DNA from: Perkinsela sp. CCAP 1560/9
Taxonomy: Eukaryota > Protista > Euglenozoa: Kinetoplastea
Assembly: GCA_965644495.1 (NCBI GenBank)
Contig: CBFFSA010000031.1
Span: 1-64,000, forward strand
Length of the DNA stretch: 64,000 bases
Direction: 5' to 3'
Shown: positions 1,020 through 63,766 of the stretch, in pieces
How the letters are laid out: the number at the start of each line of letters is the position of its first letter
Position numbering within the stretch: the stretch's first letter is position 1
Notes under the pieces: model-generated
What the model was told of the DNA's origin: nothing
The model's database searches: none
What the model saw: the letters and a program-made list of their open reading frames with translations, nothing else
Made by a program: the position numbers and the translations under genes

Positions 1020-1579
1020 TTACATCACACACTTTTCAATCTGTTTAATGTCAACTTCTTTACCCCGACTTATATGATCGGCCGAATTGTTCAACGTAGA
1101 CACATATCTCGCCTCGACACAAATCCCACGTTTCTCAGTGTCTCGTATTATTTCTTTCAATTCCTTTGACACTCCTTCTGACTTCGATGATCTCCTGTTC
1201 AACGCTGCCTTACAGGAGGTGTTATCCACGAAGATATCCAAGCACGTTCCTTTGGGGGAGTGCATAGCAAACTTTTTAATAGCTAAGCGGACCGCCATCG
1301 CTTCGGCCCGATTCACTTCATACTTAAAATTTTTCGGCCATGCCTCACCAGTAATTAATACCTCCCCAGAATCAAGGTAAATGATGGCCCCCCATCCCTT
1401 CGCAGAAGCATCCGTGTATAACTTGTGGTGGTGAGGAACGGTGTCAGGATGAGGAGGCGGGGGTCGGGGAAGATTGCATATCAATTCATTTCGCCATTCG
1501 GTAAGTGTAGAACGAGTAACTACCGGAAGATCAACTGGCTTGTCGATCAAATACGGACAGCGATTTAATAAGTTGATCC
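1020..1579 (-). pseudogene. RNase H C-terminal part of YR element 1 pol
   Basis: DIRS-type RNase H motifs LYTDASAKGWG, NRAEAMAV, FVDNTS, NSADHISR. Joins in frame to RRINL at about 2690 once the insert is removed. Confidence 0.85.
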
Positions 1580-2683
1580 AATCCAATCCAATCCAATCCA
1601 AAATACCGACAAAGTCGGCTAAAATACTTAGCACTTTCACATCAAACACTTCCATCTCTATCACCTCCAAATTCAGAGTTTTTGTGCCTCCAATACTAGA
1701 GCACACAAACCGCATAAAGTAATGGAATATAAAAACTTCCTCAAGGCATATTCTAGCACACGTACGGAGATACACAGCAAGCACTCACACTTACTTTGGT
1801 GTCCCCCTTCCACCGCCAGTTCTCGTAACTTTCTGGCGAATAACAACTCTTTCCTCTGCCTCACGTTTAGGCGCGGATGAGGCTTTCACTGCACGCTGAC
1901 TTTTCGCGTTTCGTTTTGCAAACTGCTGAGCAGTGGTTTGCGAATTTGAAGACTTTCTTCTCTTTATTTCAGGTTCGCTTACTTTCTTTCTAGATGCAGA
2001 CAATGCGAGCGAGTCTGCTGCCTCGTTCCAAGGATTTCCCGAGTGAGATTTAACTTTACACATGTATATTTGTACCCCTTGACCCTTCAACGCGCGTAAT
2101 TTATGGTCGATTTGATCCATCAAGTCTCCATTTGCAATTCCGATGTAGCCTACAACGCGAAAACGTGATCTTAAACTGTGAAAATATTGCCAAACGTAAC
2201 AAGAATCAGTATGAAAAACGCAAGAGAGTGATCCTTCTGGAATTTTCGAAATAGCCTCACGAAATGCTAATAATTCGGCCCTCTCACTTGTTCCCACCTC
2301 CAACGGAATAGAGTAGTAATCAGGGTCACCCTTAATTTTCAAGAAAACAACACCAGCACCGCTACGCACCGTTTGTGTTCCGCGCAAAACTCTCACTGAA
2401 CCATCCGTGTAGAAATGGATAGATTTAAGTTTGGGGAATGGCACGCTAGATTCTTCAATAAATTGTAGCTCTTTATAACTCTTGTTCTTGATAGCTGTGG
2501 CTTTCAATGCTTTCCATTTTTTTGTAGTAGCACGCTCGTAGTCAACCACTGGATCAAGTGAAAGTTTTAGCTTTTCGGTGAGACGAAACCAATGTTCTCG
2601 ATCTGTAGCATAAACCAAAGCCTCTTCTAAAGTTATACCCAAGTCTGAAATACATGCTTCGCTTGGAGAAGGACGTCTCCTTC
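1580..2683 (-). mobile_element. 5'-truncated non-LTR retrotransposon with RNase H and (GGATT)n tail
   Basis: 11-bp target-site duplication TAAGTTGATCC at 1569-1579 and 2684-2694. (ATCCA)n at 1576-1600 forms the 3' tail. Confidence 0.85.
1791..2642 (-). CDS. RNase HI-like domain (C-terminal fragment of a LINE ORF)
   Basis: Motifs YTDGS, RAELLA, HTDSCY, KVKSHSGNPWNEAADSLA. Confidence 0.85.
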   Translation of the reverse strand: MGITLEEALVYATDREHWFRLTEKLKLSLDPVVDYERATTKKWKALKATAIKNKSYKELQFIEESSVPFPKLKSIHFYTDGSVRVLRGTQTVRSGAGVVFLKIKGDPDYYSIPLEVGTSERAELLAFREAISKIPEGSLSCVFHTDSCYVWQYFHSLRSRFRVVGYIGIANGDLMDQIDHKLRALKGQGVQIYMCKVKSHSGNPWNEAADSLALSASRKKVSEPEIKRRKSSNSQTTAQQFAKRNAKSQRAVKASSAPKREAEERVVIRQKVTRTGGGRGTPK

Positions 2684-5047
2684 TAAGTTGATCCTACGCT
2701 GCGCGACTTTCATCGCGAAATAAAAGCGTGGCATATTGAGCCGCAAGACTGCAGATCCATACAGAAGACGCCCCACCGCCGCCTCAAGATCATCAAAAGA
2801 CAATTTATGAAATTTGTCTTTTTGCAGTTTACTGACCACTCTCGGTCCCAGGCAGACCGTATGAGTGTCGTGGTCGAAAGCCACCCCATTGAAAACATAC
2901 TTCAAAGCAGGGGGCTGTCCGGCGTCTTTAAAGAGGCCGTTTGCTTTGGAACACCGCTCGTCAATAAAGCGAGCGTATTCAACGGCATCGTTCGCTGTCC
3001 CCGAAAAACGAACTCCGTCGACGTAAACGTCAGTGGCACCTCTGTGAAACGAGAAACGCTCCTGACACACCGACCTCTCGCCGGCAATTGCGGCGGTAAC
3101 AGTGTGCATGATTTCTGGTGCGCAGCGATGACCCATGGGAAGAACGTTCATCTCGAAAACTTCGCTCAATGTCGATCGAAATCTAAACTTGGGCCGTGCC
3201 TTCAAGGGAATACTAATTTGGTAAAAACCACAAGTGAAGTCGCGCTTCACTGCCATAGCATCATGTGCTTTGTGTAGATATTTGGATGGGTGATACAGCG
3301 CAACTTCCGGTTCATAATTTAAAAGCCTGTTGTTGTCATCTCGTGTCCAGGATATAAACCTGCGGCGTTGATTACCTTCATCGTCGGTTTCAACCACTGT
3401 AAAGGGGATCATATATTGCATGGATGGTCTTTTGAGTAGGTCCTTCCCCGAAACCTTGCTTATAACGCCGGCGCCCTCAAGTAGACGTATTTCTTCCTCG
3501 GGCAAAGAACCACGTACCGAAGGCTCGGGGTACGGGCCTGTAGGAACCCATAAAAGTTCATTTAGTACCTTGCGAAAACGTGTGGCTGCCGCAGGATTTA
3601 ACCATTCCTTCACTTTGTCCAATTTAATCACCGGGATTGACTTTTTCACATGGAGGGGTAGACTCATATCCTTCGGTCTAGCGAGCCGCGAGCTACGGCG
3701 GGCACATATAACGGAGTGCCTACGGAGATAGGGGACTTCGTGAAAACACTTTGTAACATGAGAGGTTGTTAAAGTACCGGAAGGAGTGCAGACACTCGTT
3801 GTGTCCCGAGGGCCCGTGCCGTTGTAACGCTGTTTGCATTGTATCTGAGCAGTGATTCTATGTTCTGGTGTTTTGTTAGGTTTTGAACCTCCTGCATGCG
3901 CAAATTTCCGAGAGAGATTTCGTGAAACAGATGAGTGATTGCCCCCCTTTTGATAGAGTGCGTCCCGTACCCCTGACCGAGTATTGATCGTATTTGATGG
4001 TCCATCTCGCGGACTGTCGTGTAACAGAGTCGTTGCCCGGGGTTCATGGTTTGGATATGCTGCGCGAGTTCTGGCGTTCCTGGCCCAGTTACAATGGCGT
4101 AAAGGTGTGGTCGAAAAGGGTTTAGGCGTGTGGTCTTTGTGCCCCTCCCCCAATAAATTATCACTTCGCAGCTTGTTACACTCACGAACTGTTCTCTTCT
4201 TAAATCCGCGGTCTCGGTCCAACGCGCCGCTGCCTTCCAGCATAGGAGGCAACACATGCTCTCCTTCGGATTCAAGTGTCGGCGTAGCTTTTGTAGAAGA
4301 ATGGGGTTGACGGGCTGCATTTGGCGCGTGGGCTCTAGCCCCCCCTGTGCTTGCAGGGCCTTTATATATAGTTTTAAGGGAGTCGACTCTTCCCCCATTA
4401 ACTGAAATAAAGTTCGCAAGCCTCCTGCGTAACCCATTCTCGTCGAGCTGGCTAGAGGCAGCGAATGTAGGAAGAGAACCGCGTTTGTGGAATTTGAAGG
4501 AACACCCTTTGCCGCGCAGTACTGCTGCATACGTAGCCAAATTCGCTCCCTGTTGGCCCATGTGGTCGTGGCCCACATCGGTTCGAGAGCGTCGCTCAGT
4601 TGTAGTGTGCGTGGGTCGTTCGGAGGAAGGCGAAGGATGGCTTGGAGAATGGCGTTGCGGTCTGCGGCGGGTTTTTCTCCTGCGGACTGGTTTAGTGCGC
4701 GTATGGGAAGGGACCGACTTCGCGGAGGACGAGTGGAAACAACATGAGGAAGGGGAGGATTGGAAGAAAGAGGGGGTCGAGGACGCCTCACCGGAGAGTC
4801 TCGTCGGGGTAAGCGCGTTTGTAAGGTTGGAGCGGTAGGAGCCCTTTGCCGCCTGAGGCAAGGGGCACGAGTAATAGGGGTGGGGGGCATTCCCTAGTGG
4901 GAACCCCGTGTTGCGCCGGCGTAACGGACGGCGCCGCCCGCCACCCCTCCGCGAAAATCCTGATTCGTCGGATGGGAGGGACGAAACTGGTGCTGGGCCT
5001 GAGCCATCTGCGGGCAGTCCGCACGAATTTGGCCCGGCTGGTGACAC
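2684..5047 (-). pseudogene. DIRS/TATE-type reverse transcriptase of YR element 1 (interrupted)
   Basis: KRDFTCGFYQI, FEMNVLPMGHRCAP, YVDG. The N-terminal part overlaps the YR ORF in another frame. Confidence 0.85.
3769..4890 (-). CDS. Tyrosine recombinase of YR element 1
   Basis: AARWTE (R), HSIKRG (HxxR), TKH and LLRY catalytic residues. Confidence 0.85.
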   Translation of the reverse strand: MPPTPITRAPCLRRQRAPTAPTLQTRLPRRDSPVRRPRPPLSSNPPLPHVVSTRPPRSRSLPIRALNQSAGEKPAADRNAILQAILRLPPNDPRTLQLSDALEPMWATTTWANRERIWLRMQQYCAAKGVPSNSTNAVLFLHSLPLASSTRMGYAGGLRTLFQLMGEESTPLKLYIKALQAQGGLEPTRQMQPVNPILLQKLRRHLNPKESMCCLLCWKAAARWTETADLRREQFVSVTSCEVIIYWGRGTKTTRLNPFRPHLYAIVTGPGTPELAQHIQTMNPGQRLCYTTVREMDHQIRSILGQGYGTHSIKRGAITHLFHEISLGNLRMQEVQNLTKHQNIESLLRYNANSVTTARALGTQRVSALLPVL

Positions 5048-8000
5048 GAGAAGCAGAAAGGCCGACGACGGGAGGATCGAACTTGGGGACGACCTCGGAG
5101 TCGTTCGTCGAGAACGAGTTGCCCATAACGATCCTTCGGATCATCATCACGATGCAGTCGCTGTTGCACGCGTTCGACAGCAACACCCGCAGCGGCCCAG
5201 TAGAGATTGCGGAGTTCCTCGATTATGAGTTCTGCCACAGCAAGGTTATGTTTCTCCATCCAACCCTCCGTCAGGCGAGCAGCGTAGATCCATTCGATAA
5301 GGATGTTGAATAAACGGTCCCGCTGCGGTGGCGGGTTGAATCGAACCCCTAGCTGCGGCGCCTCCCGCAGCTCACGGATGAGGTCTCGGGGCTTGAACAA
5401 ATCCTCCGTGTCGATCCACGGTTGCCACGTAACCGGGTCGTAGGGGGAGAAGCTTTTGGGGTCTGTAATACGTACTCGTTCAAAGGACGGGATTAAAGAT
5501 TCCACCGGCTGCCCTCCAGGCATCTTTGCCCGAACACGGACGACCGTCAAATCGTGATACGTAATGTCGGGATGGGGAAAGCGGTATGCCGTATTGACAT
5601 CACCATCCCACTCAGCGACCAATTCTAAGGACACTGGGTCATTTTGGTGCTTCATGTAAACGTCGCCTATGACTGTCTGTCGAATGTCATCACCTGGTCG
5701 AGACCACACTGCCTCGACAGTGACCTGGTATTCTTTGCGAAGAAGATTAATTATCTTGGTTACAAATTCTTCCTTAGCAGTCTGAGTCAATATTCCACGC
5801 GCATTTTGGTTGGATCGAATAGCACGGTCTACATGGTCGAGATTAAGGTCTTCATAACGCTGAGGGGAGCGGGAAGGCTCAACTTGGTCAGGGTTGAGCG
5901 TGCTCTGCCGCCGTGGGGGAACATCTCCCGAGTTCTGGGGGGCCGTTAGGGGGTCAGGGTAAGGGCTGGGGTAAGGAGAAGGGTGTACTGTGCGTCGGTT
6001 TCGGCCAGAATAGCGCAGCGAAGGAACCGCGAAAGAGTCTACTGGCGAAGCTGGATCAGGACGAGGTGGTCGCCCAGCTGGACAAGACAAGGAACGGCGT
6101 TTGTCGGGGTCCAAAGGGGAGAGAGGACGTGTTCGCTTAGGGCTGCGGTCTCGCTCATGTCCTGGGTTCGCCGGCACGCGAAGTCGCTGGGAACGCATAA
6201 ACAAAGCTGCTGAACAAATGTTCAGCAAAGTCTTACAACCTGGACATAGGATCGTTGCTGGGATTCTTGGGTGAGGAATTCCAAGTCGTACCATAACTGG
6301 TATTTCAAAGGCATGTGAGGGAACGAAGCGGACCTCCGATTTAAGCCAATCATAATTCCCCTTTCGGGTTGTTACCCTTAAAATATTAGAATACTCCGGA
6401 TCTTGTTTTAACCTCGCAACCACTTTTTCGTGAAGTACCGCTGCCGTCGTAACTTCATCCATAGGTGGCAAAGCTGAATTCTCTTCTTCTCCAGTGTAAG
6501 GGACGTTTTGGTTTGGCAACCGAGCCCGAGCAGTAGAAGAGTTTATTCGCTCAAGAGCTTGGTAGCGTGATGCTAAATATGCCGCTTCACGAACCTTTGA
6601 ACAAGACGTCACACCTAGACCTCCTTTTTTCAGGGGCAGCCGGGCCATCTCCACCTGCTTTTCCGTCAGTGGACCGAGCCACTTCTTCAATACGCTCTCG
6701 ACATTGTCATTGAATTTGGTGGAGGCCTCCTTTGTCACAGATGGCGGATGGACGCGCATGGCGTATTGTTGCTTAACATTGATACACTGCGAAAGAAGTA
6801 TCAATGCAACATTGCTTAATCCCATTGCTTTTAATCTCTGGAAGCTTGTATCTTGTTTATCCACTGCTTCCATTAATCTTTTCTTGATCTGATTCTCTTT
6901 GCCGATGTGTGCCCCCAATACTTTGACCGCTTCTTCCTCATTGCGCACACCCTGTACCTTCAGGCTTGGTGGGATTGGCTGAGCCGACCCCTCCCCAAAC
7001 CATATACACTTCTTTGTTGCTAGCGTGAGCGAGTATTGAACCATCAACTCTTGGAGTCTCTGAAACGCTTTTTCGATTTGAGCACTTTTTAGGGAGGACA
7101 TGGTAACGTCATCGATGAAAGCGTGAAACTCCACTTCGGGAAATTCCATCGACAGTGTTTCCAGCATGGGTTGAAAAAAGGCGCAATAATACATGGAAGC
7201 CAATGGTGAACCCTGCCGCAGACCTGATGTGCTTAGGACTGTTCCGACCAATTTTCCTTCTGAACCATAATACAGCAATTCAGAGGCCCCCGAGTATTCG
7301 ACCTCGAAGAATCGCTGGAAAGGGCGGAGTGCTCTGAAGGCTAAAACGTGCTTTGCTATATCCATTCTGCTCGGCGAGTTAAAGGCATTTTTAACGTCTA
7401 CGGATAGAATGGAATATCCATTGCTGTGGCGATTCCGAAGTTGGTGCACTATTTTCTCACATCCCGCTTTTGAGAAAACGCCCTGTTGCATGGGTGCAAA
7501 TAACGGAGCCAGCGTATGCTCATACCTTTGCATTAGGACTATGCCGGCCAATTTATTGAGCACCTCACCCATTGCGACTGGGCGAACCCCTCCACAACTT
7601 TTGGGAATGGCAACCAGCCTAGCGCGGTTGATGCGACGAATCACGTCCTTGCCCAGGAAACCGTTGATGAGATCACATGTCATGTGACACAAATTGATGC
7701 AGCAAAGTTCATCATCAAGCAGCAGCCGTACAATGCTATCCGTCATCCCTGTTGGACCCGGATTGGCCCCTTTCGCCAGGCGCTTTCCAGCAGCACGGAG
7801 TTCTTCCATTTCAATCCCAGACATTATTGGCGCGTCTGCTGGGATTCTGAAGTCGCATTCTTTTTGAGGATGCAATTCTGACAACTTGTCCAAGGTTTCC
7901 TCATCCGGAAGATTACTTGGCGTGAAGGCTTGATCTAATACTCTGGCTGCTTTTGACGCGCACCCTTCAGTAACCAACCGCGTTGCTCTTTTGATAGCTC

Positions 8001-8559
8001 TCCGGTCATTCAAGGCGGCCTGATCTTCCTTGTCATCGTTATTTTTAGGATATGGTCTTTGTCTCCTACTCCTCCCACTGGCGCGGCGTACTCCTGCAAG
8101 CGACAGCTTCATCACCGACAGCAGTCGATGCCAAATAATATTCCTCTGCTGGTGATCGGCACTGATGTAATCCTTTACAATTTCACGAAAAGTTGCGATG
8201 ACGCATGGAATAAGGTCAGGACTGATATTCCGAACGGTGGGTATTGGTAAGAGATCAACTCCCTCCCCCTGTACGTTGTCTGGGGTCAGTGTGATCAGAT
8301 GATTCTCGATAGTACTATCACGTAACACGGTAACATCAATCGGAGGTGGCGCTTGATGCCAGATAATGCGGAAGATTCTCACGTTTTCTTGGGGCGGCAG
8401 AGATCCTGTGTATTCCTGTTCTTCTTTGTACCCTGAGATCCCCGTGTATTGCATTGAGAGTTTCCCCATCCCTCCACGCTTGTTATGCGTTCGCACTACC
8501 TTACCGCACGCCATATTGATCTTTTCCTGATTTGCAAAAGCCCACACTATCGAACACAA
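4894..8559 (-). CDS. Chimeric ORF: CRE-B reverse transcriptase fused in frame to YR-element gag-like protein
   Basis: RT motifs VDVKNAFN, GLRQGSPL and FIDD, up to CPGCKTLLN. It then switches at about 6212 to the gag homologue of 26944-27987. Confidence 0.75.
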   Translation of the reverse strand: MCSIVWAFANQEKINMACGKVVRTHNKRGGMGKLSMQYTGISGYKEEQEYTGSLPPQENVRIFRIIWHQAPPPIDVTVLRDSTIENHLITLTPDNVQGEGVDLLPIPTVRNISPDLIPCVIATFREIVKDYISADHQQRNIIWHRLLSVMKLSLAGVRRASGRSRRQRPYPKNNDDKEDQAALNDRRAIKRATRLVTEGCASKAARVLDQAFTPSNLPDEETLDKLSELHPQKECDFRIPADAPIMSGIEMEELRAAGKRLAKGANPGPTGMTDSIVRLLLDDELCCINLCHMTCDLINGFLGKDVIRRINRARLVAIPKSCGGVRPVAMGEVLNKLAGIVLMQRYEHTLAPLFAPMQQGVFSKAGCEKIVHQLRNRHSNGYSILSVDVKNAFNSPSRMDIAKHVLAFRALRPFQRFFEVEYSGASELLYYGSEGKLVGTVLSTSGLRQGSPLASMYYCAFFQPMLETLSMEFPEVEFHAFIDDVTMSSLKSAQIEKAFQRLQELMVQYSLTLATKKCIWFGEGSAQPIPPSLKVQGVRNEEEAVKVLGAHIGKENQIKKRLMEAVDKQDTSFQRLKAMGLSNVALILLSQCINVKQQYAMRVHPPSVTKEASTKFNDNVESVLKKWLGPLTEKQVEMARLPLKKGGLGVTSCSKVREAAYLASRYQALERINSSTARARLPNQNVPYTGEEENSALPPMDEVTTAAVLHEKVVARLKQDPEYSNILRVTTRKGNYDWLKSEVRFVPSHAFEIPVMVRLGIPHPRIPATILCPGCKTLLNICSAALFMRSQRLRVPANPGHERDRSPKRTRPLSPLDPDKRRSLSCPAGRPPRPDPASPVDSFAVPSLRYSGRNRRTVHPSPYPSPYPDPLTAPQNSGDVPPRRQSTLNPDQVEPSRSPQRYEDLNLDHVDRAIRSNQNARGILTQTAKEEFVTKIINLLRKEYQVTVEAVWSRPGDDIRQTVIGDVYMKHQNDPVSLELVAEWDGDVNTAYRFPHPDITYHDLTVVRVRAKMPGGQPVESLIPSFERVRITDPKSFSPYDPVTWQPWIDTEDLFKPRDLIRELREAPQLGVRFNPPPQRDRLFNILIEWIYAARLTEGWMEKHNLAVAELIIEELRNLYWAAAGVAVERVQQRLHRDDDPKDRYGQLVLDERLRGRPQVRSSRRRPFCFSCHQPGQIRADCPQMAQAQHQFRPSHPTNQDFRGGVAGGAVRYAGATRGSH

Positions 8560-9748
8560 AGTTCCTGCCTTTATTTGCTTGGATTGTCTCCAGATTTCGT
8601 CAGGTGGTATGGGGAATTATGTTTTGACGTCAATGTTCTGCATAATCTCAAAGACTTCTGAGCTTCCGTCCGGGTGTTCGTCTTTAATAAAGCTGATCGG
8701 ATGGACAGCACCTTCCCGTTGTGGTTTATCTCCCTGAGGCGAGTCGCAATCCTGGAACTCACGCGCTGAGTGATCCTCCAAACCTTCAGATGCGGCTGCT
8801 ATTTCCTCGTTCCTGACAGGTGGCTCAAGTGATTGACCGGATTCCTTGCTCGTGTCCGGAGGTTGTGCGTCACCTGCTGCATTGAAAACTGCATCTGACA
8901 TGGCGTTTGATGCCGCTTTTAAGGCGCCAGCTGCGACGGCACAAGTTTTTTTAATACGAATGCGCCATTTTCCCGTGTCGTTCGGTTCTCCAATCGGGGC
9001 CGCGGGAGAACATGACGCCGCTTTAGCTGGAGATGCTAGCAATTCGACTGGATACGACATCCGTAAGGGGAGTGGCGAGGGAAGCTTCAAGGGTTGAGAC
9101 GCAATTGGAGGTCGCAATGTTTCAATGTTTGTTCGCTGTGAAGGGAGATGAGATGCTGGAGGCGGAGTTTTTGTTGATGCCTGCGGTGATGGTTCTGCCT
9201 TCCATGTCTCTAAGTTCAAGGCTCTCATGCGTGCTCTTCGTGATGAGGTGTGCATGCTCGGCCTTGACAACGGCGGAGGCCCAACGAGCGACACGGAGGG
9301 AGGCGGAATCGGCGCGACGGGGGCCGTATCGGAGGTCAGAAGAGGCGGCGCCGCACACATCACGACGGGCAGCTCGGCAGAGCGCGGAGATGACAGCATA
9401 TCGGGCGGCGCAGTGGTCACCACAGTGGGCGGAGAAGCGATGGGATGATCGACGATCACCGCGGGAGCGACAGGCACATCGGGCGGAAGAGGAAACGCAG
9501 CAGACGTTGCAGACGACGCGGCGGGAAGAGACGTCGCGGCGGGAGATGGCGGCGCAGCAGACGGCGCAGGGGAAAGAGATGGCGGCGCAGCAGACAGCGC
9601 AGGAGAAAGAGATGGCGGCGCAGCAGACGGCGCAGAGGGAGATGGCGGCGCAGCACACTGCGTATTCTGAGAATGCTTTTTCCGCCGGGTGGGGGGGAGG
9701 GGCAAAATAACCGGTGCTACACCAGCCTCTTTCGCTTTGGCGCGCGTG
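6213..9748 (-). mobile_element. CRE/SLACS-clade non-LTR element, subfamily B (endonuclease lost; nonsense codon at 8617)
   Basis: ORFs 8617-9748 and 4894-8559 share a frame, separated by TAA (KT*FPIP versus KTQFPIP in the paralogue). Pro-rich N-terminus TRAKAKEAGVAPV. Confidence 0.85.
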
Positions 9749-9749
9749 T

Positions 9750-11362: not shown

Positions 11363-11535
11363 CTTTTTTTTCATATGAATACGATCTCCATGCGAAGCGA
11401 TCGAAACATGTTAGAACCCAATAAGTAAAACCTATAAATTTACGATTTTGTATGTTGGAGATAATACATCCTTACACTAAATGGTAAGATTTTCTTGATA
11501 AAGAAACTCGCGAAATGCAAAAGTTTTTGTTGAAT
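11363..11535. repeat. Copy of the 3' terminal region of the DIRS-type element at 39978-43477
   Basis: Matches about 40160-40329. Confidence 0.85.
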
Positions 11536-12330: not shown

Positions 12331-12373
12331 GTGTTCCCGTGCCAAAAGGGGCGCGGTCGACGCTTACGAACGT

Positions 12374-52574: not shown

Positions 52575-53483
52575 TAAATTTTCTTTTTTAGGCTCTTCGT
52601 TAAACGCGGTGGTTGCTTTCAACTTAGAAGTCACTCATGCTGCGCGCTTCGCGTTGAAAACTACCGCCGCGTTTAACGAAGAGCCTAAAAAAGAAAATTT
52701 AGCCTGGAAAACGGAAAGATTATAGCCAAAAATAGCCGAATTTCGGGTACAAATGGGGTCATTTTCGCATATTTTTGCTCTCAGAGCACTAAATCCGACA
52801 TTTGCGCGTGGGAAATCACTCGCAGGCATGAATGAAAGCCTACCGAACGTATTGGGTAGAGAATACGACTCCAACCATACCATTCTTTCGACACAAAAAT
52901 GCCCCTTTAGGTCCGAAAAATACTTTTTCACCTTTTTTAGTCAAAAGTGGGTCATTTTGAGGGGCGCACCACAGTTCGAAGAAGTGATACCTTGCGAAAA
53001 CAACTGCGTAGAAAGCTAGTGTAGGTCCCAAACTATCAAAATACAATAGGGGAAACGATTTTGGAAAAATATTTTTTTTGTCATTTTTTTCGCCAAGTTG
53101 AATTTTTTTTCGAAAAAATTTTTCCGAAAAAATCCGAACTTGGCGGACCCGTCCTGCGGATACGCGGGGGGTTCACCCCAGGGTAGGGGGGTGGAAAATG
53201 CGCGCCAAGACCCCGGCTACCCTTTCTGCGGTTTTTTTTCGAAAACTAATTTTTTCGAAAAAATTTGATCGACCATGCCCCCCCCCCCTGGACCCCCCCC
53301 CTGGACCCCCCCCCTGGACCCCCCATTTTTTTCAAAAAAATTTTTCAGTTTTGGACCACCGGAGCCCCCTTTTATATTTTTTTCTTCTATTATATTACTG
53401 TGTTCCTCTTTATATTTTCACTGTTTTTGTTCACTTTTTTTTCAATAATCGAGTGTAGAGCGGTAGTTTTACAACCACCGCAA
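52575..53483 (+). mobile_element. Helitron/Helentron-like element copy 2 (inverted relative to copy 1, both tips clipped)
   Basis: Reverse complement of about 25-962. Ends at the terminal hairpin without CTAG. Confidence 0.6.
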
Positions 53484-56400
53484 TAAATAGATAAATAAAT
53501 ACGCTAACCTGGAAATGTCTATAAGTATTTCGTATTGGCGCTACCCCCCATTGTATGGGGGTAGTTCTAACTAAGCTTACGCGTCTTTGTAAGCTAAATC
53601 TTATAATTCTATATATTTAATATTTGACCTACGATAGTGCTTTGCTCATTTGAGAACACAGCACAGTGCCGTTTAACTCCTGGAGGTGCATTATGAAATC
53701 TTGCACAACGATATCGCGATCACGCCCGCTAGCATCGGCCAGAGATTTCAGGAGAGCCAGGCCACTTTTGTTCATTGCTCCTCCGGCGAGTATTGATACG
53801 CATGTAAATTTTTCATGAGGCATTAGATCCGAGTTAACATACGTGTCGACTTTGCGTTTTTCGGCTTCCTGCATTAGCTGATTGCTCCGTTTACCGAGAT
53901 TCGTCTTGGATATTTCATTTATGATAGTGAGGTCATAGAATATCTCACCGGACGCCCAGTAAATTGCTAAGTCTGGTCCGCTGCGATGGAATGATGCGGT
54001 TCCACACTTTTTCTGATGTTCATGTTTGCGCTGTTCATTCACCGATTCATTACATTTCAGGCATCGATAAGTGGTGAATTGTCTCGGTTCCCGCTCGCAT
54101 GGGATTCCGGTCTGAAGACAGAGGTCGTAAATATGACGAACGAGAGCATGATGTCGCGTTGTCGCATTTGCGCCTGTGCATTTAACGCAACCGAGCAAGT
54201 GTGCTAGAAAGTGTTTTGATTCGAGAATCATTTTGCATCCAGGGCATATGATTTTGTCCGGCATACTCTTGTGCGCAAGACCAAGTCGTGCCATCACCAT
54301 TAGAGAGAATTGAGATGATGGAATATATCTCGTTTTTCCTTGCAACCAATCGTGATTACCCTTTTCACTGCACGCCTTTACCAAAGGTGCCAACTCCTCG
54401 TTTTTCTTTGTCAGCTCTTGATACGTCTTCTGATTGAGCATAGCCTCCGTTGCGGGGCCATCATTTACTGATTCGCTGTCCTGCGCTATACCTTCGTCGC
54501 ACGTTAATCGAGCTGATTTTGGTTTACATTGCTCAAGAGAAACGCGTTTAGAAGAGTTGTACGCGGACGTACGAGAGTCAGTAGATGATGGCAGGCCGAG
54601 CCCACCTTTCTTCATCGGCAACCGGCACCAAGCGATGTGTTTATCTGTCATTTTGCCAAGCCATGTGTTCAACACCGCTTCAACATCGCTGTCGAATTTT
54701 TTGCATAGTTTTTCCGATGCTATTGGTGTGTGTACCCGGGTGTGGTACCTATGTCTAATGTTTACGCTTTTCGATAGTAGAAGTAGTGATATGTTGTTTA
54801 AACCCATGCGCTTGAGACGTCGGAATATGGCTTCGTGCTTTTCAAGCTTCTGTGTCAGACATTCACTGACTACTTCGTCGTTGCCTATGTATGCACCTAG
54901 GGTCTTTGTCGCTGAATGCTTGATTTTCACTCCTTCTGCTTCAAGTTCTGCTGGGATTGGTATATCATGCTTTCCGCCAAACCACACGCATTTGTGTTTG
55001 GCCATTTTGACTCGTTTCTCCGCTAGGAGGCCGTGTAGACGACTGAATGCATCAGCTAACGCTTGTTGGTCCTCAGATGCTAGGTTTATGTCGTCGATGA
55101 ATGCGAAGATTTTTACTTGTGGAAATTCCATTGCCGGGGTTTCTATGATAGGCTGCATAAATGCGCAAAAGTACAAGGTAGATAACGGAGATCCTTGTCG
55201 TACTCCAGCTGAGCTATATATCGTCTCGTAATGCTCACCGTTTTTTCCGTAATATAAAAGCTCAGAGGCCTCCGAATATTCCGCGTGAAAGAATCTACGA
55301 AAAGGGCGCAATGTGCATAGGCCGAAAACGACTTTTGAGATGTCGCTACGCATAGGCGAGTTAAAGGCATTAGCGAGATCGATTGATAGAATGGCTTTGC
55401 CTTCTTGATAATGGCTATGAAGACGGTGCACTACTTTTTCGCATCCAGACTGTACAGATACTCCAAATTGTAACGGGGCGAAGAGTTTTTCGAGTGTATG
55501 TTCGTGCCGTGCTACTAATACGATTCCCGCCAGTTTCAGGAAGACTTCGCCTACGCAGATTGGTCTGACGCCTTTGTCTGCCTTTGGTAACGCTACCAAG
55601 CGTGCTCGTTTCAGACGATTCATTACTTGTTTTGACAGAAGTCCATTTATCAGATCCGCAAACATATAACACATGGAGACGCAACAAATTTCGTCGTCCA
55701 AGAGGAGCCGAATTATTGTGTCAGTGGTTCCCGTAGGTCCTGGTGCCGATCCTTTGGCAAGACGCCGACCTGCGTCCCTGAGTTCTTCGGTGGAAATGAT
55801 GGCTATCTCAGGAGAGTCATCCGGGAGCTCAAAGTTTTCATGATTCTGCGGATGCAGGTCCCGTAGTTTGGCGCATACATCGTCGTCTGTTAGTTCCTGT
55901 GGTCGCACTTCCTGATCTAGCACTTTTGTTGCCTTAGAGACACACCCTTCTAGGGCCAGGCGGGTCGCTTTTTTTATGGTGCGTGCTTCTGTTTTGCTCA
56001 GTTCCTCCGCATCTCCAGCGTTTTCATCCGGGATCGGCCGTTTTCTTCTTCGTCGAATCGACGCGGTTCTCACTACTGTTAACGAGTGCTTCATTGCGGA
56101 TAGGACCCTATTCCAAATGTCGTTTCTGTCATCATACGAGTTGGTGGCGTAATTCCGCATAATGTCCCGGTAAATTGCTACGACACATGGTGCGAAATCG
56201 GCATGAATCGCTCGGAGCTTCGGCATCGGCGCTAAATCCAAATCTTCTTCAGTGTGTTGTGTGACGGGTGGGCTGGCAACCGGTATTGAGTTCATATGTT
56301 TATCCATAGCGGACTGTTTTTTAAGCCACTGAATCTTATATATTCGAACATTCGCTTGCGGGGGAATTGCTCATCATCCGATGGTAGAAAGGTAACAAAA

Positions 56401-57290
56401 ATAAACTCTCAAAACTTAACAAGCATACACTTTCTATAAAGCTCACACTACTGTTCGAAACCAAGAATCCATATTCAAACACTATAATTAACTCATAAAC
56501 AAGACGTCATGACTATAACCAAAGAAAACAAAGTAACCTTCCCATCACACAACTTCTCACCTCTCAGCTTGCGAACGGGTCACGCGGGGAGTGGTTTGGG
56601 GGTTGGTGGGTGGGGAAACTTTAATCGCGAATAAATCAAACAGACGCTAAAATGAATCAAAATCTCAAATTCAATGTCAAATATATATCATCACTATATC
56701 ATCTTTCGCCACTATATCATATTATATTTCGGGGACAATAATTCGGGGGGAGATTTGTTTCGGGGGGAAAACCCCCGGTAGGGGGCATCCTGAATAATGA
56801 CGCCCCATCTCCTTTGATCAATTCTTATCGTAAACTTTAAGAATTGCTCATCATCCGATGGTAGAAAGGTAACAAAAATAAACTCTCAAAACTTAACAAG
56901 CATACACTTTCTATAAAGCTCACACTACTGTTCGAAACCAAGAATCCATATTCAAACACTATAATTAACTCATAAACAAGACGTCATGACTATAACCAAA
57001 GAAAACAAAGTAACCTTCCCATCACACAACTTCTCACCTCTCAGCTTGCGAACGGGTCACGCGGGGACCACCCATTCGCACGTACTCCAATCACCCAATC
57101 GCTTGTATGGCAGATAAATCCGGTGCCTACTCCAGACGTACCTCCCATTACAAAACATTTTTATATATATATATATATATATACATTTTTATATATATAT
57201 ATATATTTATATATAGAGATATAGATGTAATATGAACTATATGCTAGAACTACTTTTTTTTTTTTAATCTTATGTTGTCCAAAGTCTCTG

Positions 57291-60053
57291 CTACAATCTA
57301 CTATACGGATCCGCAGGGTTATCCTCAGAACGAATATACTGCGCTTGGACTGCGATACCTCTCTTCTGCAAATAATTCAACAACCTACGAAGCTCTTCCG
57401 TGATCCCATCCGAGCTTGATACTTTCCGATTGACTGCAGCAACGCAAGATGTATTATCCACAAACAGGTCTACACACGTTCCTTTCTCAAAATGTTGCCC
57501 GTACTTTTCAAATGCCAATCGCACTGCGCGGGCCTCCGCTCTGTTTACTTCATACTCAAATTCCTGAGGCCACTGTGCACCTGTGCACAACATCTGACCG
57601 TAGTCAAGATACAAAACTGCGCCCCACCACGTGGACGATGCGTCAGTACACAAAACATGCTGATGCGGAACTGTGTCCGGATGACACGGTGGATCAACAG
57701 GAGATCGATGTAATAGAGCATCACGCCATTCCGTAAGAGTAACCCGCACAGGGGTCGGTAAAGGTACTTGCTGGTCAAGAAGAGACGGTTCTCTGTTCAG
57801 CCGATTAATTCTACGGCGTACAATTTTTAATTCGAGATGAAACTGTGGTAAATGCATACCCATCACCGCTGACGCAAAAATCATTCGACCCAACGCTGAC
57901 TCCAAAGAACCATACGTTGCTGTAGCAAAATCGTCCTGCGTTAGACGGCGCGTTAATTTTGGACCTAACGATACCTTTCCTAGGCCATGGTGATACGTGA
58001 TACCATTAAACGTGTAGGTCTGCGATGGAGGGGCTCCGGCATCCTTAAAACGCGCATTGACTTCCCTAGCCCGGTTGTCTACGAACCTGACGTATTGTTC
58101 AGCGATCACTTCGCTCCCCGCAAAACGGATACCATCTATATAAACATCGGCATTATCTGAAGAAAACGCGGCATCCGCGGTACAAAATTGCTTATCCCCT
58201 TCCAGCGTCGCTGTTAGTACATGCATTATTTCGGGTGCACACCGATGCCCCATAGGCATTACATTCATTTCAAACAAATCGCCTTTCGCATCCTTAAATC
58301 GAAACTTCTCTCTACATGTTAAAGGAATAACCACTTGCCAAAATCCACACGCTAAGTCGCGCTTCACCGCCGTTTGTTCTTTTACACGATGCAAATAGTA
58401 CGCTGCATGCTTTAACTCAACATGAGGATGATACGTTTCCTTAATTCGCTCGTTGTCACCTTGCGTCCAAGCAATGAAACGCCGTCGCTCCGACCCATCT
58501 TCGGCGGGCTCAACTACCGTAAAAGGAATTACCCAATCCCGAGACGGGCGCTTTGCAGCCTCGGCGGTAGTAACTCGTGTAATGAAGCCTTGGGCTTCCA
58601 ACAATTCTACGTCACTAGCTGGTAAAAAAGATTTAAATTTCGGAGCGGGAGCTCGCTCATCGGGAACTTCTAACATCATTTTCCACGTCTGATCAAAACG
58701 CATACGTTGCTCTTCGTTCATCATTCCTCGTAGTTTACGAATATCCATCTGTGGAATCCCACTTTTGATATGCAAAGGAAGACCAAAATCTTTCGTGGTC
58801 GCCACTTTAGACGTGCGACGCGTGCGTGTTATAGTATGTCTTACCTTTTCTGCTGGAACATCATCAATGTACTTGCTAAAAACAAGTTCCTCTTCTACCA
58901 TATGTGCAGCTTTCTGGTCGCTTTCTGGGTCCCGAGGGCTAACGCCGTTGTCACTGGGTCGGAATTGTACCGGAGTAACGATTCGATTGACTGGTGCTTT
59001 GCGAGGTGCTGTACCTCGTCGAGACGGACGTTGCCGTCGGCAACCTGCTTTAACAACTGCGTAATGGCCCCACGCTTTGCCGAATGAGTCCCGTATCCGC
59101 TGCCGAGAATTTTGCGTATCTTCGAATCCGCCTCCGTCACCGTTGCGCGTGACATTGGTTGGAGGTGTCCGAGTTTGTGTATGTATAACGCCAGGCGATT
59201 TGTTCCCTCGCCCTCTACCACCGTATACATTGAGGGCCGATACGGGTTCAGACGGGACGTCTTTGTCTTCCGTCCCCACCAAATTACAATTCGCGTTGCG
59301 GATACCTCGTAAAAACGATCCCTGGTGAGCGTTGCTGTCTCCGTCCAACGGCTTGCCGCTTACCAACACAGCAGCAATGTATGTTTTTCGCTTGACGGTA
59401 GGTGGATCCATAACATGTTCAATTGCGTGGTGGTGAGGGGGGACATCTGTCGGAACGGCTCTGCCGCTCCCTCGGCCATGAGGGATTTGATGTAAAAACG
59501 CAGGGGATTGGTTTGCATGCCGGCCATGCTTAATATCGCCGCTACGCTCCGCGCGTAAGTCAACTTTCCCTGAATTTTGATCGGCATTTCGGCGATGAAA
59601 GTCACGGCGTGCAACGGAGTTATTGGAATTCCCTTCCAATTGCAGAATGTTGTTAGACGCTCCCACAGCCTGGCTCTGGCCTGCCACGTGGAGACGCTCC
59701 ACATCTCCGACATTGCGTCCAATGCAGTGCGTACTTCTGGTGTGAGCACATTCACTCCCATTAGCAACTTCATGAGGCTTAGTCGCGCTGGAGCGGTCTG
59801 TTGAAGACTCAAAGTACCGTTGTATAATTCTCCTGAGGTGATCAATCTCCCTTTTAAGTTCACCGAGTTGGGCGTATACTCCATGCTGCATATTTTCCTT
59901 CTCTTCATCACTTGCGTAGAAATTACTGTAATTCGACGTTTGAATTTTATGACAGTACTGGCCGTTAGTGTGGGGTCGTTTCAAAGACTCTTGCTGCTTG
60001 AAGCAGGGCCAGCCACCCGCGCCCGAAAACCCTGCTGGAAACGTTTTGGGCAA
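57291..60053 (-). CDS. RT-RNase H of YR element 3
   Basis: KRDLACGFWQV, MPMGHRCAP, YIDG, CTDASSTWWG, NPADPYSR. Confidence 0.9.
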   Translation of the reverse strand: MPKTFPAGFSGAGGWPCFKQQESLKRPHTNGQYCHKIQTSNYSNFYASDEEKENMQHGVYAQLGELKREIDHLRRIIQRYFESSTDRSSATKPHEVANGSECAHTRSTHCIGRNVGDVERLHVAGQSQAVGASNNILQLEGNSNNSVARRDFHRRNADQNSGKVDLRAERSGDIKHGRHANQSPAFLHQIPHGRGSGRAVPTDVPPHHHAIEHVMDPPTVKRKTYIAAVLVSGKPLDGDSNAHQGSFLRGIRNANCNLVGTEDKDVPSEPVSALNVYGGRGRGNKSPGVIHTQTRTPPTNVTRNGDGGGFEDTQNSRQRIRDSFGKAWGHYAVVKAGCRRQRPSRRGTAPRKAPVNRIVTPVQFRPSDNGVSPRDPESDQKAAHMVEEELVFSKYIDDVPAEKVRHTITRTRRTSKVATTKDFGLPLHIKSGIPQMDIRKLRGMMNEEQRMRFDQTWKMMLEVPDERAPAPKFKSFLPASDVELLEAQGFITRVTTAEAAKRPSRDWVIPFTVVEPAEDGSERRRFIAWTQGDNERIKETYHPHVELKHAAYYLHRVKEQTAVKRDLACGFWQVVIPLTCREKFRFKDAKGDLFEMNVMPMGHRCAPEIMHVLTATLEGDKQFCTADAAFSSDNADVYIDGIRFAGSEVIAEQYVRFVDNRAREVNARFKDAGAPPSQTYTFNGITYHHGLGKVSLGPKLTRRLTQDDFATATYGSLESALGRMIFASAVMGMHLPQFHLELKIVRRRINRLNREPSLLDQQVPLPTPVRVTLTEWRDALLHRSPVDPPCHPDTVPHQHVLCTDASSTWWGAVLYLDYGQMLCTGAQWPQEFEYEVNRAEARAVRLAFEKYGQHFEKGTCVDLFVDNTSCVAAVNRKVSSSDGITEELRRLLNYLQKRGIAVQAQYIRSEDNPADPYSRL
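58895..59911 (-). pseudogene. Tyrosine recombinase of YR element 3 with a nonsense codon at 59360
   Basis: LLCW*AASRW versus LCWKAAARW in paralogues; HSAKRG, KH, LLRY. Confidence 0.82.
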
Positions 60054-61107
60054 TTACGCCACAAGTGCTCTGGGGATTGACACCCGAAACATAATAACTT
60101 GCGTTGAGAGAAATTAGACGGACGCGGTTGGGCTTGACCATAACGTGCGGTAGAATAAACGTGAGCAGATGAATGAGCGACTGCGCGGGAGTGTTGCTTT
60201 TGACGTTCCACCAATTGTTCATTTACGTGGTGGTAAAACTTATCATTGGGCCGCACTTCTTTTTTCAGCTTCTGGTGAACCAATTCGACATCTACCTGGC
60301 GAGCCTGCCAATACGCGTCGCGAAGAGTCTGAATGATTGCACGTCCCATTTCCAGATAGGGTCCTTCGTTCCAATTAGGGATGATCCGGGCAAAAAGAAT
60401 CCACTTGAAGAAAACATTATTAAAAAATCGCTCCTGGCGTATGACGAATCCTCGATCCTGGTAATAATGATTTACACGGAGTCCATATTCCGGCGCGTCG
60501 CGGAGCTCACGCATCAAGTCTCTCGTTCGAAAGCCTCCATCATCGAAATAATTAATCCACGGACCAAAAGTAATAGGCTCATACGGATCTAATGCGTTAG
60601 GATCAACTCCTTCCGGGATTTGTGCATTGGGATCGCTACTCAGTTGCGACGTTGGACATATTGGCCGTGCCCCCAGTTCTTCACGTAGCTCTTGGGTCGG
60701 AGGTTCATTTACATCCTGCGCTTCCTGAGCACTTAGGGGTCTTCGCCGAGACAACTTTCGTTGTTCAACGAGATTCACTTCAAAATAATCTAAGTCGGGG
60801 TGTGGAAACTCGTACTCCTTCGAAGGCTTATCTTCCCATACCCCCATAACTTTAAGCCCTCCTTACGTAACTTACCATATAACGTTTGTCGCTTGCCGGA
60901 AACATCATCCTTACGACGAAAGGTAGCCATCACATGGGCCGACGGATTATCTCCCTGCATACCTGTCAATGTTTCGCGGGCCATCGTGGCAACTAAACTA
61001 AGCTCTTGCGGATTAAGCGGCTCGGTAGGCTCGAGCTGCTGCCCCGCCGGGGAAGAACTACGGGAAGATCGTAAGGTACGGGTATCCGGACCGTCGATGA
61101 GCGGCAT
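59981..61107 (-). pseudogene. gag-like ORF1 of YR element 3, frameshift near 60845
   Basis: Two frames (60790-61107, 59981-60847); knuckle CFGCQSPEHLWRNC. Confidence 0.75.
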
Positions 61108-62769
61108 AAAGAAACTTTAATCGCGAATAAATCAAACAGACGCTAAAATGAATCAAAATCTCAAATTCAATGTCAAATATATATCATCACTATATCATCT
61201 TTCGCCACTATATCATATTATATTTAGGGGACAATAATTCGGGGGGAGATTTGTTTCGGGGGGAAAACCCCCGGTAGGGGGCATCCTGAATAATGACGTC
61301 CCATCTCCTTTGATCAATTCTTATCGTAAACTTTAAGAAGAAAACCTTTGAAGGTGTTGTCGACCTTGTGACCTTGAACTCCGATATACTCCATAGACAG
61401 CTTCGTTCTTACATTCCTGCGATTTATTGTAGCTACGGTACCTTTTGAAACACTCAACGTGGTTTGGCAATCAAAGCCCCAGGTCAGAAAACATACATCA
61501 CCAGTTTTGGCATTGCCAATGGCATTGGAAATTCCTTCCGACGTCATTGGGAAGTTGTGTCGTGGGTCCATCGCGCTCGGGACTTCAGAATCGGGCTTCC
61601 TACTTACTCCGGTTTCGCTGGATAGATTTTCGGAGTCGGGATCGATCGGGTGTGGGGAGTGGCATTCATGAAAAACATGGGACGTATTAGGAGATTCGGT
61701 TTCGCTTTCGATGTCCTGTGGGATCGCGTGGGTATCAACTGGTAGCGGCGATGGGAGCCGATTTTCTTCTGCCGCGTTTTGCGCATGACCGGTAGTTTGT
61801 GGCGTCGCATTAACGTCTGCAGTTTCCGCGAAGATGTCAAAGGCGCGTACGTCGTGTACATAACCTTCCCCATTGTAGGTGTAGCCTCTACTCATCATTT
61901 TCGTGTGAAATGCTTTGCGCTCGTGTGTCCAAGGAGATTCTCTTTGTGACTGAAGTGTTTCCGCAGGCTCGTTTCCGGTGTTGAAAACTGCTCCGATGGC
62001 TTGTGCGGCGACAGCGCACGTCTTCTTAATTCGGATACGCCATTTTCCTGTTTCTTTTGGCTCTCCTGACGACAGATCCGCGGGTGGTTGTTGCTCTGCG
62101 GACGGCAGCTGGGTCTCTTTGTTCGCAGGTGTTAGCGTTCGGTCTGTTCTATGTGTTATCTGTGGCGTGGGCGCCGACTGTGTAGGTTCCGATTGTGGAC
62201 GTGGAGGTTCCGGTTGTGGAGATGACGGTTCTCGCTGATCTCGCGCTGGCCCTGGGGAAGGAATGAGCGGTAGACGGGGTGGTGATGGCGATTTCGGCGC
62301 TTCGGAATCGGCCGAGGACATCTGCAGAGCTCTCGTTCGCGCTTTACGCGAGAATGCGTGCATGCTGGGACGTGGGGCGGGTGGAGACGAGGACAGCACA
62401 CCCGACGGAGGCGAAGTCGGTCCACATCGTGGAGGTGAAGGGTGCGAAGGAGATTGCACGTGGGGCGCAAATGGCAACTGTTGCGGAGGTGGTGGTGGCG
62501 GTGGCAGGGGCGATGGTGGTGGCGGCGATGGGGGCGGCGGTGAGGGCGGCGATGGGGGCGGCGGTGAGGGCGGCGATGGGGGCGGCGGTGAGGGCGGCGA
62601 TGGGGGCGGCGGTGAGGGCGGCGATGGGGGCGGCGGTGGCGGGTCCTTTGGGAGCTTCTTGCGGCGCGTGGGGGGAAGCGATTGAACAACGGGAGCTACC
62701 CCCGTATTCTTCGCCATGGCACGCGTGAGCATGCCCATTTAATAAAATTTAATAAAAAGAGTCAACAAT

Positions 62770-63090
62770 TCCATTGTGAAGGCCTTCGAGAGACTACACA
62801 CGCTACTTATTGAAAAGCAGGTAAAAATGGCGAAACAAAAGTGTGTGTGGTTTGGTGGTCTAAACATGATACCGGTGCCTGACAAACTGAAGTCCGAAGG
62901 AGTCATAACTGCATCTAAAACAACCAAAACGCTCGGGGCATACATTGGCGATTCTTCCGCAGTAAGCCTGCAATTACAAGACAAGCTCAAAAAATATTCT
63001 ACGTGTTTCACAAAGATTTGTTGAAAGACAAGGACCTCTCACCACTAGTTCAAGTCTGCAGCGAAAAGGGCAATAATGACTGGCTCCACA
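62770..63090 (+). pseudogene. Inverted, internally deleted CRE-B fragment
   Basis: KCVWFGG...TKTLGAYIG, then LSPLVQVCSEKGNNDWL. Confidence 0.8.
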
Positions 63091-63240
63091 TCTCTTTATT
63101 CCTGCTAAATCCCCATCGCACCTCGCAAGTCGTACCTTTGCCCCATTCTCTAATAATTTGTTGGACTTGGTCAGGGGCTTTTGCGAAACTTTTTTTTTTT
63201 TTTTTGGAGTAATCTCCCACAATAAAGCGGGAAGTTGAAA

Positions 63241-63766
63241 TGTTGTCTTTTATCTATTATAAAGGTTTACATCAATCAATCAATCAAAACTTTCAGCTGT
63301 GTAGGTCTACGAATTGATAGAACCTAGCCATGCGGCCTTTGGTAGGCTGTCGCGTAATTGCGTGATATAGTCTCCTAAATTTCCTCTCGTATATTTCTTT
63401 ATAAGTATACTTATAAAGAAATCAACTTAATATGCACTTGCGTACATCCCAGTCTTGCCTTGCGAACTTCCCAGAAACTGGCGTAACTGGGCGTAGACTT
63501 CGTTTCCATTTAAGTCTCGGAGTAATAACTTGAAGTCCATCTCCACTGTCTTCCTATCCAACATGGCTGCATCCGCAAGTGCATGTATCAGAAATCTTGT
63601 GTTCTGGTGGAGAGAACCGCAAGAAAAGATCGGAAGGCATTGAAACGCGAACTCTGGAATCATACCGGTTGTAACGTAGGTATCTTTCTTCCGTTTAATT
63701 ACGTCTTGCATTAGTTTCACGCAAGTTTTAGATTGGTTCGATGGCGCAAGCTCGTGTATTATAGAC
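63241..63766 (-). pseudogene. Third copy (3' end only) of the CRE-B element at 46730-51315
   Basis: Near-identical to 46731-47258; T16 tail at about 63190. Confidence 0.9.

Follow-up and report, generated by a model that had tools for sequence, protein, structure and literature searches.

How does a stretch of DNA come to be filled with retroelements of many families, nearly all in one orientation and without a host gene, and does such an arrangement imply that the locus has a function? The question is raised by the first 64 kb of contig CBFFSA010000031.1 (here C31; 98,693 bp) in the 21-Mb, 110-contig assembly of the kinetoplastid Perkinsela sp. CCAP 1560/9 (GCA_965644495.1). This 64,000-nt stretch is called the window below, and other contigs are labelled in the same manner. 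An earlier note had read its plus strand as a chain of first-strand cDNAs whose transcription would be antisense to every resident family, making it a memory locus for transposons. Our analysis favors a plainer answer, to which we assign a probability of about 0.68: the window belongs to a transposon-only region filled by repeated retrotransposition, in which the poly(A) tails of copies already in place were the preferred points of attachment for new cDNAs, and no function at the level of the locus is indicated.

Strand bias and content of the window

Strand content was measured by tblastn with 23 element proteins drawn from the window. Element-coding similarity covered 49,715 bp of the minus strand (19 merged segments) against 1,755 bp of the plus strand (4 segments). 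The entire contig behaves alike, with 58,520 bp minus and 2,472 bp plus, and its open reading frames (ORFs) of at least 250 amino acids (aa) are nearly all on the minus strand. Homopolymer runs share this polarity: the window holds 26 T-runs of at least 9 nt (20 of at least 12 nt; longest 28) against 3 A-runs, the longest of 10 nt, and for runs of at least 10 nt the excess has a binomial p of ~1.5e-6. The Pfam reverse transcriptase (RT) family RVT_1 was matched in about 12 minus-strand ORFs (E 1e-12 to 3e-21). The inventory comprises several CRE-like subfamilies, four gag/RT-RNase H elements and one RNase H ORF, and searches of the window for tRNA genes and for Rfam families returned none. The strand asymmetry, the T-run excess and the one-way, gene-free transposon content described in the earlier note were all confirmed. 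The genome as a whole is retroelement-rich, with more than 1,000 RVT_1 candidates and more than 1,300 candidates for the CRE-like protein.

At least 12 of the ~18 unit 5' ends directly adjoin the poly(A) of the previous (upstream) unit, and such tail-to-head joints are far too frequent to have arisen by chance. The evidence supports the units as processed, poly(A)-tailed cDNA copies, several of which retain relics of the spliced leader (SL) at their 5' ends. The claim that units abut one another without target-site duplications (TSDs) does not hold throughout. Duplications of 8 bp (CRE-G), 7-9 bp (CRE-D) and 33 bp (the train described next) were found.

A 25-kb train within one target duplication

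The largest run of joined units, here called the train, comprises the following features:

11502..11534, minus strand: 33-bp target duplication, downstream copy (exact 33-mer)
11535..36537, minus strand: train, 25 kb, head to tail, ~12 units (junction listing; unit borders from genomic copies)
11535-17703, minus strand: ~9 short poly(A) units of the train (junction listing)
11886..14940, minus strand: CRE-F, tail 11886-11910 (near-identical genomic copies)
17704..21880, minus strand: CRE-A (Pfam: LsmAD-like N-terminus and RT; restriction-like endonuclease, RLE, by motif; SL matched to genomic SL genes)
21881..31415, minus strand: CRE-B1, tail 21881-21906, 99.6-99.7% identical to CRE-B2 and CRE-B3, interrupted by YR2
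23225..28135, minus strand: YR2, gag/RT-RNase H element with zf-CCHC gag, inside CRE-B1 and co-oriented with it
31416-36537, minus strand: CRE-E', the upstream-most train unit
36538..36570, minus strand: 33-bp target duplication, upstream copy (exact 33-mer)

Read from 36537 to 11535, the train consists of CRE-E', CRE-B1 (with YR2), SL-capped CRE-A, and then the ~9 short poly(A) units together with CRE-F. All of its joints run tail to head. For instance, the 5' end of CRE-B1 adjoins the A13 tail of CRE-E', and the full SL relic of CRE-A (21840-21880) adjoins the A26 tail of CRE-B1. Identical 33-mers bound the train on either side. Contig C31 carries three copies of this 33-mer (11502-11534, 36538-36570 and 40295-40327), while intact YR1-type elements elsewhere in the genome carry two, ~350 bp apart. 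Because three copies are present here instead of the normal two, the whole 25-kb train can be assigned to a single target site. This anatomy fits either a founding insertion followed by repeated additions at its tail, or a multi-template cDNA produced in one event. Very short units, such as A10-TTGTT-A23 in the window and an 8-nt unit repeated between tails on contig C20, are hard to explain as separate insertions.

The SL relics of the train are in part duplicated. Two SL 3' halves lie in tandem at 36498-36537, the 5' end of CRE-E', and the 5' part of the SL is duplicated at 21857-21880 in CRE-A as well as in another assembly (L029:9470-9525). These tandem and partial duplications suggest that recycled copies may have been re-spliced, or that SL RNA may have been re-copied by the RT. 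Separately, the last 25 nt of the CRE-E' 3' untranslated region (31429-31453), just before the A13 tail, include a perfect 16-nt complement of the SL 3' half and read SL-like on the plus strand.

Separate insertion events in the window

Outside the train, the window and its immediate flank hold these elements:

1023..6219, minus strand: YR4, gag/RT-RNase H element, pol 1065-4621, gag 4924-5940 (tblastn, 34-56% identity to YR2/YR3 proteins)
1794-2693, minus strand: RNase H ORF within YR4 (Pfam RNase_H, E = 5.5e-16)
6220..9972, minus strand: CRE-C, RLE-type element without long terminal repeats (non-LTR), 3' end cut off by YR4 (RVT_1, tblastn, own-genome protein search)
9882..11472, plus strand: P2, old CRE fragment, 9882-10346 and 10981-11472 (blastx collinearity)
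36579..39977, minus strand: CRE-G, single insertion flanked by an 8-bp TSD
39978..43478, minus strand: YR1, RT-RNase H element, repeats A1 43317-43478, B1 40327-40381, A2 40003-40164, B2 39977-40031
43474..46703, minus strand: CRE-E, 5'-truncated, its A21 tail (43474-43494) adjoining the first base of the YR1 A1 repeat
46704..51836, minus strand: CRE-B2 retro-unit: SL relic 51819-51836, 510 nt of a sequence called Z (51327-51818), CRE-B2 46716-51326, tail
51838..52416, plus strand: P piece 1, old CRE-D-like element, aa 246-438 (blastx/tblastn)
52415..62766, minus strand: CRE-D, inserted in P and carrying YR3 (~56371-61339) and an inverted copy of the repeat Rep935 (52575-53485)
62767..63089, plus strand: P piece 2, ~aa 436-519 and 656-677
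63088..64000, minus strand: Z fragment of 102 nt (63088-63189), A16 tail and CRE-B3 3' end, running on to contig position 68523
contig 68526-69227, plus strand: P piece 3 (outside the window), aa 679-912

Two old plus-strand elements have been split by younger arrivals. P is kept as three collinear pieces spanning 17 kb and parted by minus-strand insertions, of which CRE-B3 with its Z fragment entered between aa 677 and 679. P2 is likewise collinear across an interruption of ~630 bp that bears minus-strand poly(A) units. Other insertions are marked by their own duplications or empty sites. CRE-D, whose 5' end retains the final 4 nt of the SL, has a TSD of 7-9 bp with copies 10.3 kb apart (52408-52416 and 62767-62775). 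CRE-G has one of 8 bp (36571-36578 and 39978-39985), and a paralogue of its empty site lies 300 bp away at 40295-40345. The insertion of YR2 into CRE-B1 is precise, with the empty site carried by both CRE-B2 and CRE-B3, and YR4 interrupts CRE-C towards its 3' end. In the RT region, CRE-C and CRE-B are 62% identical.

Copies elsewhere give a further view of relative age. CRE-F is 100% identical over 3,045 bp to C19:153265-156309, and its other copies are 99-100% identical with differing 5' truncations; judged by these identities, the CRE-F unit is very young. The short units next to it are 92-98% identical to their nearest copies. Because of the split plus-strand elements, the individual TSDs, the empty sites for YR2 and the 100%-identical copies elsewhere, the window is a mosaic of independent events. 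The plus strand is not one first-strand cDNA chain, as had been proposed.

The flanks of CRE-B2 and CRE-B3 are instructive in this respect. The 5' flank of the former and the 3' flank of the latter are the two halves of one Z site, with 7 nt (GTTTCGC) common to both, and the uninterrupted Z sequence is present in a public contig. CRE-B2 carries upstream Z together with Z's own SL relic, and CRE-B3 carries 102 nt of downstream Z. The Z/CRE-B2 junction and the CRE-B3 tail/Z junction are each unique in the genome, and an assembly search with both diagnostic junctions found no source copy outside contig C31. Most simply, CRE-B2 and CRE-B3 would share a source that lay inside a Z element missing from the assembly. 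Their flanks point to probable 5' and 3' transduction, in which sense read-through transcripts would have been processed by trans-splicing.

At three places on the contig (43474, 84640 and 81571) a CRE tail adjoins the first base of a YR1-type terminal repeat (GATATTTTATT...); in its native context this repeat follows AAAAA. A related copy at 17683 lies instead inside a 65-nt unit between A13 and A26 tails. The AAAAA before this terminal repeat may be a preferred short A-run target.

These insertions also bear on the possibility, raised in the earlier note, of a chromosome-end array of the HeT-A/TART kind, with units added serially onto a free DNA end. The array is polar, tail-to-head and composed of transposons only; the window starts at a contig end; and fungal relatives of the CRE clade are telomeric (PMC12857005). 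The telomere repeat (TTAGGG)4 was absent on either strand of the whole 21-Mb assembly, so that telomeres are either unassembled or made of another repeat. However, internal insertions with matched duplications 3-25 kb apart imply that duplex DNA was entered and not an end extended. Nearest-copy identities show no age gradient along the train, and the contig ends in ordinary repeats, Rep935 and a Helitron-like ORF. A chromosome-end origin therefore appears improbable.

Spliced-leader joints across the genome

The host SL is of the euglenozoan type, ending ...ACAGTTTCTGTACCTTGTTG immediately before GT. SL-gene-like matches are dispersed through the assembly, more than 500 with up to 2 mismatches and 93 exact (e.g. 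C1:44373 and C1:661317). The SL RNA genes occur as several 5'-half variants and are likewise dispersed rather than held in one tandem array.

At 45 distinct genome sites (26 forward, 19 reverse), a full-length SL relic was found no more than a few bases after a poly(A) of at least 12 nt; this count is a lower bound, as the pattern search missed tails longer than ~23 nt such as the window's A26. Forty-five tail-adjacent SLs lack the intron GT, and only 1 of 46 has the GT of a real SL gene. Elements of this type have 198 SL-capped 5' ends genome-wide, and a related CRE-B copy in L029 also carries a full SL. The bases found between tail and SL, or replacing SL positions 1-4, are T, CT, G, GGG, GAG and TAG. 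Such extra or altered bases fit an RT that would have copied up to the capped, modified 5' end. The relics show that the element families are expressed as sense, SL trans-spliced and polyadenylated mRNAs, which lends no support to transcription of the plus strand at this locus.

Polar arrays also occur elsewhere. Over the 200 kb of contig C20 that were examined, poly(A) runs fall into strictly polar clusters of either orientation (6 T-runs at 27-32 kb, 13 A-runs at 38-63 kb and 9 A-runs at 148-155 kb). Among them are arrays of ~200-nt units truncated to different extents at their 5' ends, each unit lying behind an intact tail of ~23 nt; the non-transposon ORFs of this contig are leucine-rich repeat genes and transposase-like ORFs on both strands. 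In the match tables, matches on C28 and C34 are all plus, which suggests plus polarity over 35-45 kb, and orientation is mixed on C22, C27 and part of C1. Stacking characterizes the genome and is not particular to contig C31. Because comparable arrays exist in both orientations in many places, contig C31 is at most the largest example and not the singular locus that had been proposed.

This distribution weighs directly on the memory-locus reading, according to which one or a few RT-written cDNA chains would act in the manner of flamenco by supplying antisense plus-strand transcripts and small RNAs, a heritable memory of transposons. Its appeal lies in the uni-strand content, in the train inside one target duplication and in the documented template jumping of R2-type proteins (PMC11371274). 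Argonaute/Piwi genes also exist in this genome: three identical tandem Piwi-domain ORFs of 973 aa lie at C7:656178-681371, and two Piwi-like ORFs of 926 aa lie on C11 and C21. These genes permit the model but do not show it. The window is demonstrably a mosaic of separate events, however, and the same stacking recurs at no fewer than 45 sites, with clusters in both orientations. In addition, SL relics indicate sense and not antisense expression of the families, and a single, doubtful candidate RNA run contained none of the sampled sequence words. We consider this reading very improbable. A related version, in which the arrays would be largely written by serial template jumping over capped SL-mRNAs of any retroelements under expression and at least the largest would be read antisense to feed Argonaute/Piwi, fares no better.

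Domains and classes of the elements

The RT of CRE-A has R2Bm as its best PDB match (8gh6/8ibw); PDB searches were otherwise weak. A regular-expression search found the C-terminal order CCHC, (R/K)H(N/D), E, xPD, D in CRE-A, CRE-G and the C-terminal ORF of CRE-B. On visual inspection, the CCHC finger and PD..D are also present in CRE-D and CRE-E, with RHH or KHS replacing (R/K)H(N/D). The strict SLACS/CRE REL spacing of PMC12857005 was not matched, and an additional zinc finger lies between E and PD. The Pfam domain Exo_endo_phos, which marks an apurinic/apyrimidinic endonuclease (APE), was found in none of the ORFs scanned. With both the RT and the CCHC/PD-(D/E)xK features present, the CRE-like units qualify as RT-plus-RLE elements of the R2/CRE-group non-LTR type. 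Their assignment to the CRE clade itself is provisional, and homology searches gave unnamed proteins alone. Site-specific insertion into SL RNA genes, the hallmark of the CRE clade, was not found: flanks vary among copies, and the SLs are spliced relics.

The YR-type elements have a zf-CCHC gag, with weak Pfam matches to RT_RNaseH and RVT_1. In YR1, split direct repeats in the order A1 ... B1-A2-B2 were mapped by blastn of the element against the contig, a layout like that of Ngaro, PAT and DIRS. A combination typical of the DIRS/Ngaro/PAT group, split direct repeats with gag and RT-RNase H, is therefore present. For a tyrosine recombinase, no Pfam match reached E<=1, whether in the pol ORFs or in two conserved, overlapping ORFs (25786-26943 and 3772-4893).

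How the array may have grown

We propose that the region was built by R2/CRE-type non-LTR elements and short non-autonomous derivatives of these, together with gag/RT-RNase H elements that have split direct repeats. A new cDNA would be joined preferentially at the poly(A) tail of a resident copy, by one of two routes. In the first, target-primed reverse transcription (TPRT) would be initiated repeatedly at tails; because the nicks would be staggered inside the A-run, the upstream tail would stay intact and the duplication would be invisible. In the second, a single event would comprise serial template jumping, the RT leaving each RNA at its 5' end and resuming at the tail of another. The orientation of the stack would pass to every addition, so that trains extend head to tail. 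Ordinary TSD-flanked insertions and the insertion of YR-type elements into residents would enlarge the pile further. Most of the strand bias may be ascribed to this inheritance of polarity, by either route.

The premise of the second route, on which the earlier note relied, is sound: R2 proteins extend full-length cDNA onto further RNAs, and head-to-tail tandem insertions are formed in cells (PMC11371274). Some of the joints, at least, may credibly be ascribed to serial template jumping. As to which route dominates, tail-directed TPRT and template jumping explain the anatomy equally well. Tail length was considered as a discriminator between stepwise and single-event growth and was dropped, as staggered nicks within the A-run also leave tails intact.

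Several observations weigh against the proposed account. About eight events that are not stacked (CRE-G, CRE-D, CRE-B3, the train and the four YR-type elements) are all in minus orientation, two of them antisense to their host element P, and stacking alone leaves this unexplained. The uniformity over 98.7 kb also exceeds that of C20, C22 and C27, each with mixed orientations on a scale of tens of kb. The bimodal distribution of tail lengths (10-16 and 21-28 nt) is compatible with stepwise stacking and single-event chains alike. Finally, public read-derived de Bruijn contigs over 46600-52500 stop at repeat borders and follow paralogues, and among the pieces inspected none bridges a junction.

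The first of these points could be met if orientation were set mainly by a regional process, such as polycistronic transcription or a replication-fork direction that biases TPRT, with stacking secondary. The unstacked minus-strand insertions, including the two into plus-strand P, speak for such a process. Read-through transcription in the sense direction would also express the elements, given their dependence on trans-splicing. On the other hand, other transposon-rich contigs mix orientations within tens of kb, and contig C31 has no host genes to define a transcription unit. As the main determinant, such a process seems unlikely. As an addition to stacking, a regional bias from replication or read-through transcription is a reasonable candidate explanation for the shared orientation of the unstacked insertions.

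The unbridged junctions, together with the repeat content of the contig throughout, could also be taken as signs of an artefact, i.e. a chimeric contig or collapsed or mis-joined repeats. Against this, the component sequences of that interval were all present, at 97% identity or more, in each of four DNA-like public runs from one study. Long-range consistency is seen in the CRE-D TSD (10.3 kb), the train duplication (25 kb), the P pieces (17 kb) and the CRE-B1 halves around YR2. Because matched duplications and collinear split elements agree over 3-25 kb, the contig appears to be correctly assembled, and an artefact is the least probable of the explanations considered here.

Comparison with known systems

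Among known arrangements, the array is best filed as a polar retrotransposon cluster of the Zepp or telomeric-array sort, in a new form. The original 1997 paper on Zepp, an element of Chlorella and Coccomyxa, reportedly described insertion at the poly(A) in one direction, and the corresponding feature, copies joined at resident poly(A) tails in the same orientation, is seen here. Zepp clusters of 1.5-42 kb likewise consist of nested non-LTR copies inserted into one another without host genes, and repeated TPRT at tails has been proposed for them (PMC3446292). Zepp, however, is one L1-type family with one cluster per chromosome. Here, many RLE-type families and gag/RT-RNase H elements contribute, 5' ends are SL-capped, clusters occur on both strands and Pfam scans gave no APE.

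Serial template jumping by R2 is similar in its RT and restriction-like endonuclease and in that, once a cDNA is full-length, synthesis passes to a further RNA at its 3' end and gives head-to-tail products, both in vitro and in cells (PMC11371274). In contrast, R2 copies one supplied template, whereas the joints described here link different natural families, poly(A) to capped SL. HeT-A/TART/TAHRE and MoTeR/FoTeR also form polar head-to-tail non-LTR arrays, and the latter two group with the SLACS/CRE clade and share its REL domain (PMC12857005). They add to chromosome ends or telomere repeats, unlike the internal, TSD-flanked insertions found here in the absence of a telomere repeat.

SLACS, CRE1, CRE2 and CZAR resemble the CRE-like units in having a single ORF that encodes an RT, then a CCHC zinc finger and a PD-(D/E)xK endonuclease, in an SL trans-splicing host. 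They interrupt SL RNA genes at a fixed position, whereas the SLs here are spliced relics and insertion sites vary. Drosophila flamenco likewise lacks host genes and gathers transposons of many families in one orientation. It is defined by a promoter, antisense transcription and Piwi-interacting RNAs, whereas here there are many arrays, in both orientations. In dinoflagellates, DNA-encoded SL relics mark reverse-transcribed mRNAs (PMC6050394). The likeness extends to the SL relics in DNA, tandem partial ones here at 36498-36537, but theirs mark host retrogenes and those described here mark retrotransposon copies joined to poly(A) tails.

Other repeats and tandem units

One further feature was delimited at the left edge of the window:

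25..962, plus strand: copy of Rep935, a dispersed and locally tandem repeat of ~935 bp with G-rich runs and a terminal palindrome (self-comparison of the contig)

Rep935 was matched at more than 150 places in the genome, on both strands and with 90-98% identity, and its copies often stand in tandem. Besides the copies in the window (25-962 and 52575-53485), the contig carries it at 85182-86117 and 92254-93935. Its features are G8-12 blocks spaced by TCCA and a terminal palindrome of ~150 bp (838-995). A 4.6-kb unit is repeated at 99.6% identity at C31:86865-91503 and 94058-98693; it holds a minus-strand ORF of 1,564 aa with DUF6570, which we take to be Helitron-associated, and internal 267-bp tandem repeats. 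Window positions 10300-10978, i.e. the left edge of P2 with the inserted poly(A) units, are 97-99% identical to a tandem unit at C33:72983-91704 (at least 10 repeats, period ~1.86 kb). A transposon junction appears to have given rise to this C33 satellite.

Implications

This genome holds dozens of natural junctions in which a complete, cap-proximal SL 5' end is fused to the poly(A) of a different retroelement, and at least one 25-kb multi-family train within a single target duplication is preserved in natural DNA. Together they offer a rare natural record of how RLE retrotransposons complete their 5' junctions, by template jumping or by tail-directed priming. This is of practical interest, as R2-type proteins are being engineered for gene insertion. 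Should the antisense reading of template-jumped arrays prove true, they would represent an RT-written, self-extending record of active transposons in an SL trans-splicing protist. Strictly polar, gene-free transposon islands can arise without a dedicated function, and this cautions against reading uni-strand clusters as small-RNA loci from their sequence.

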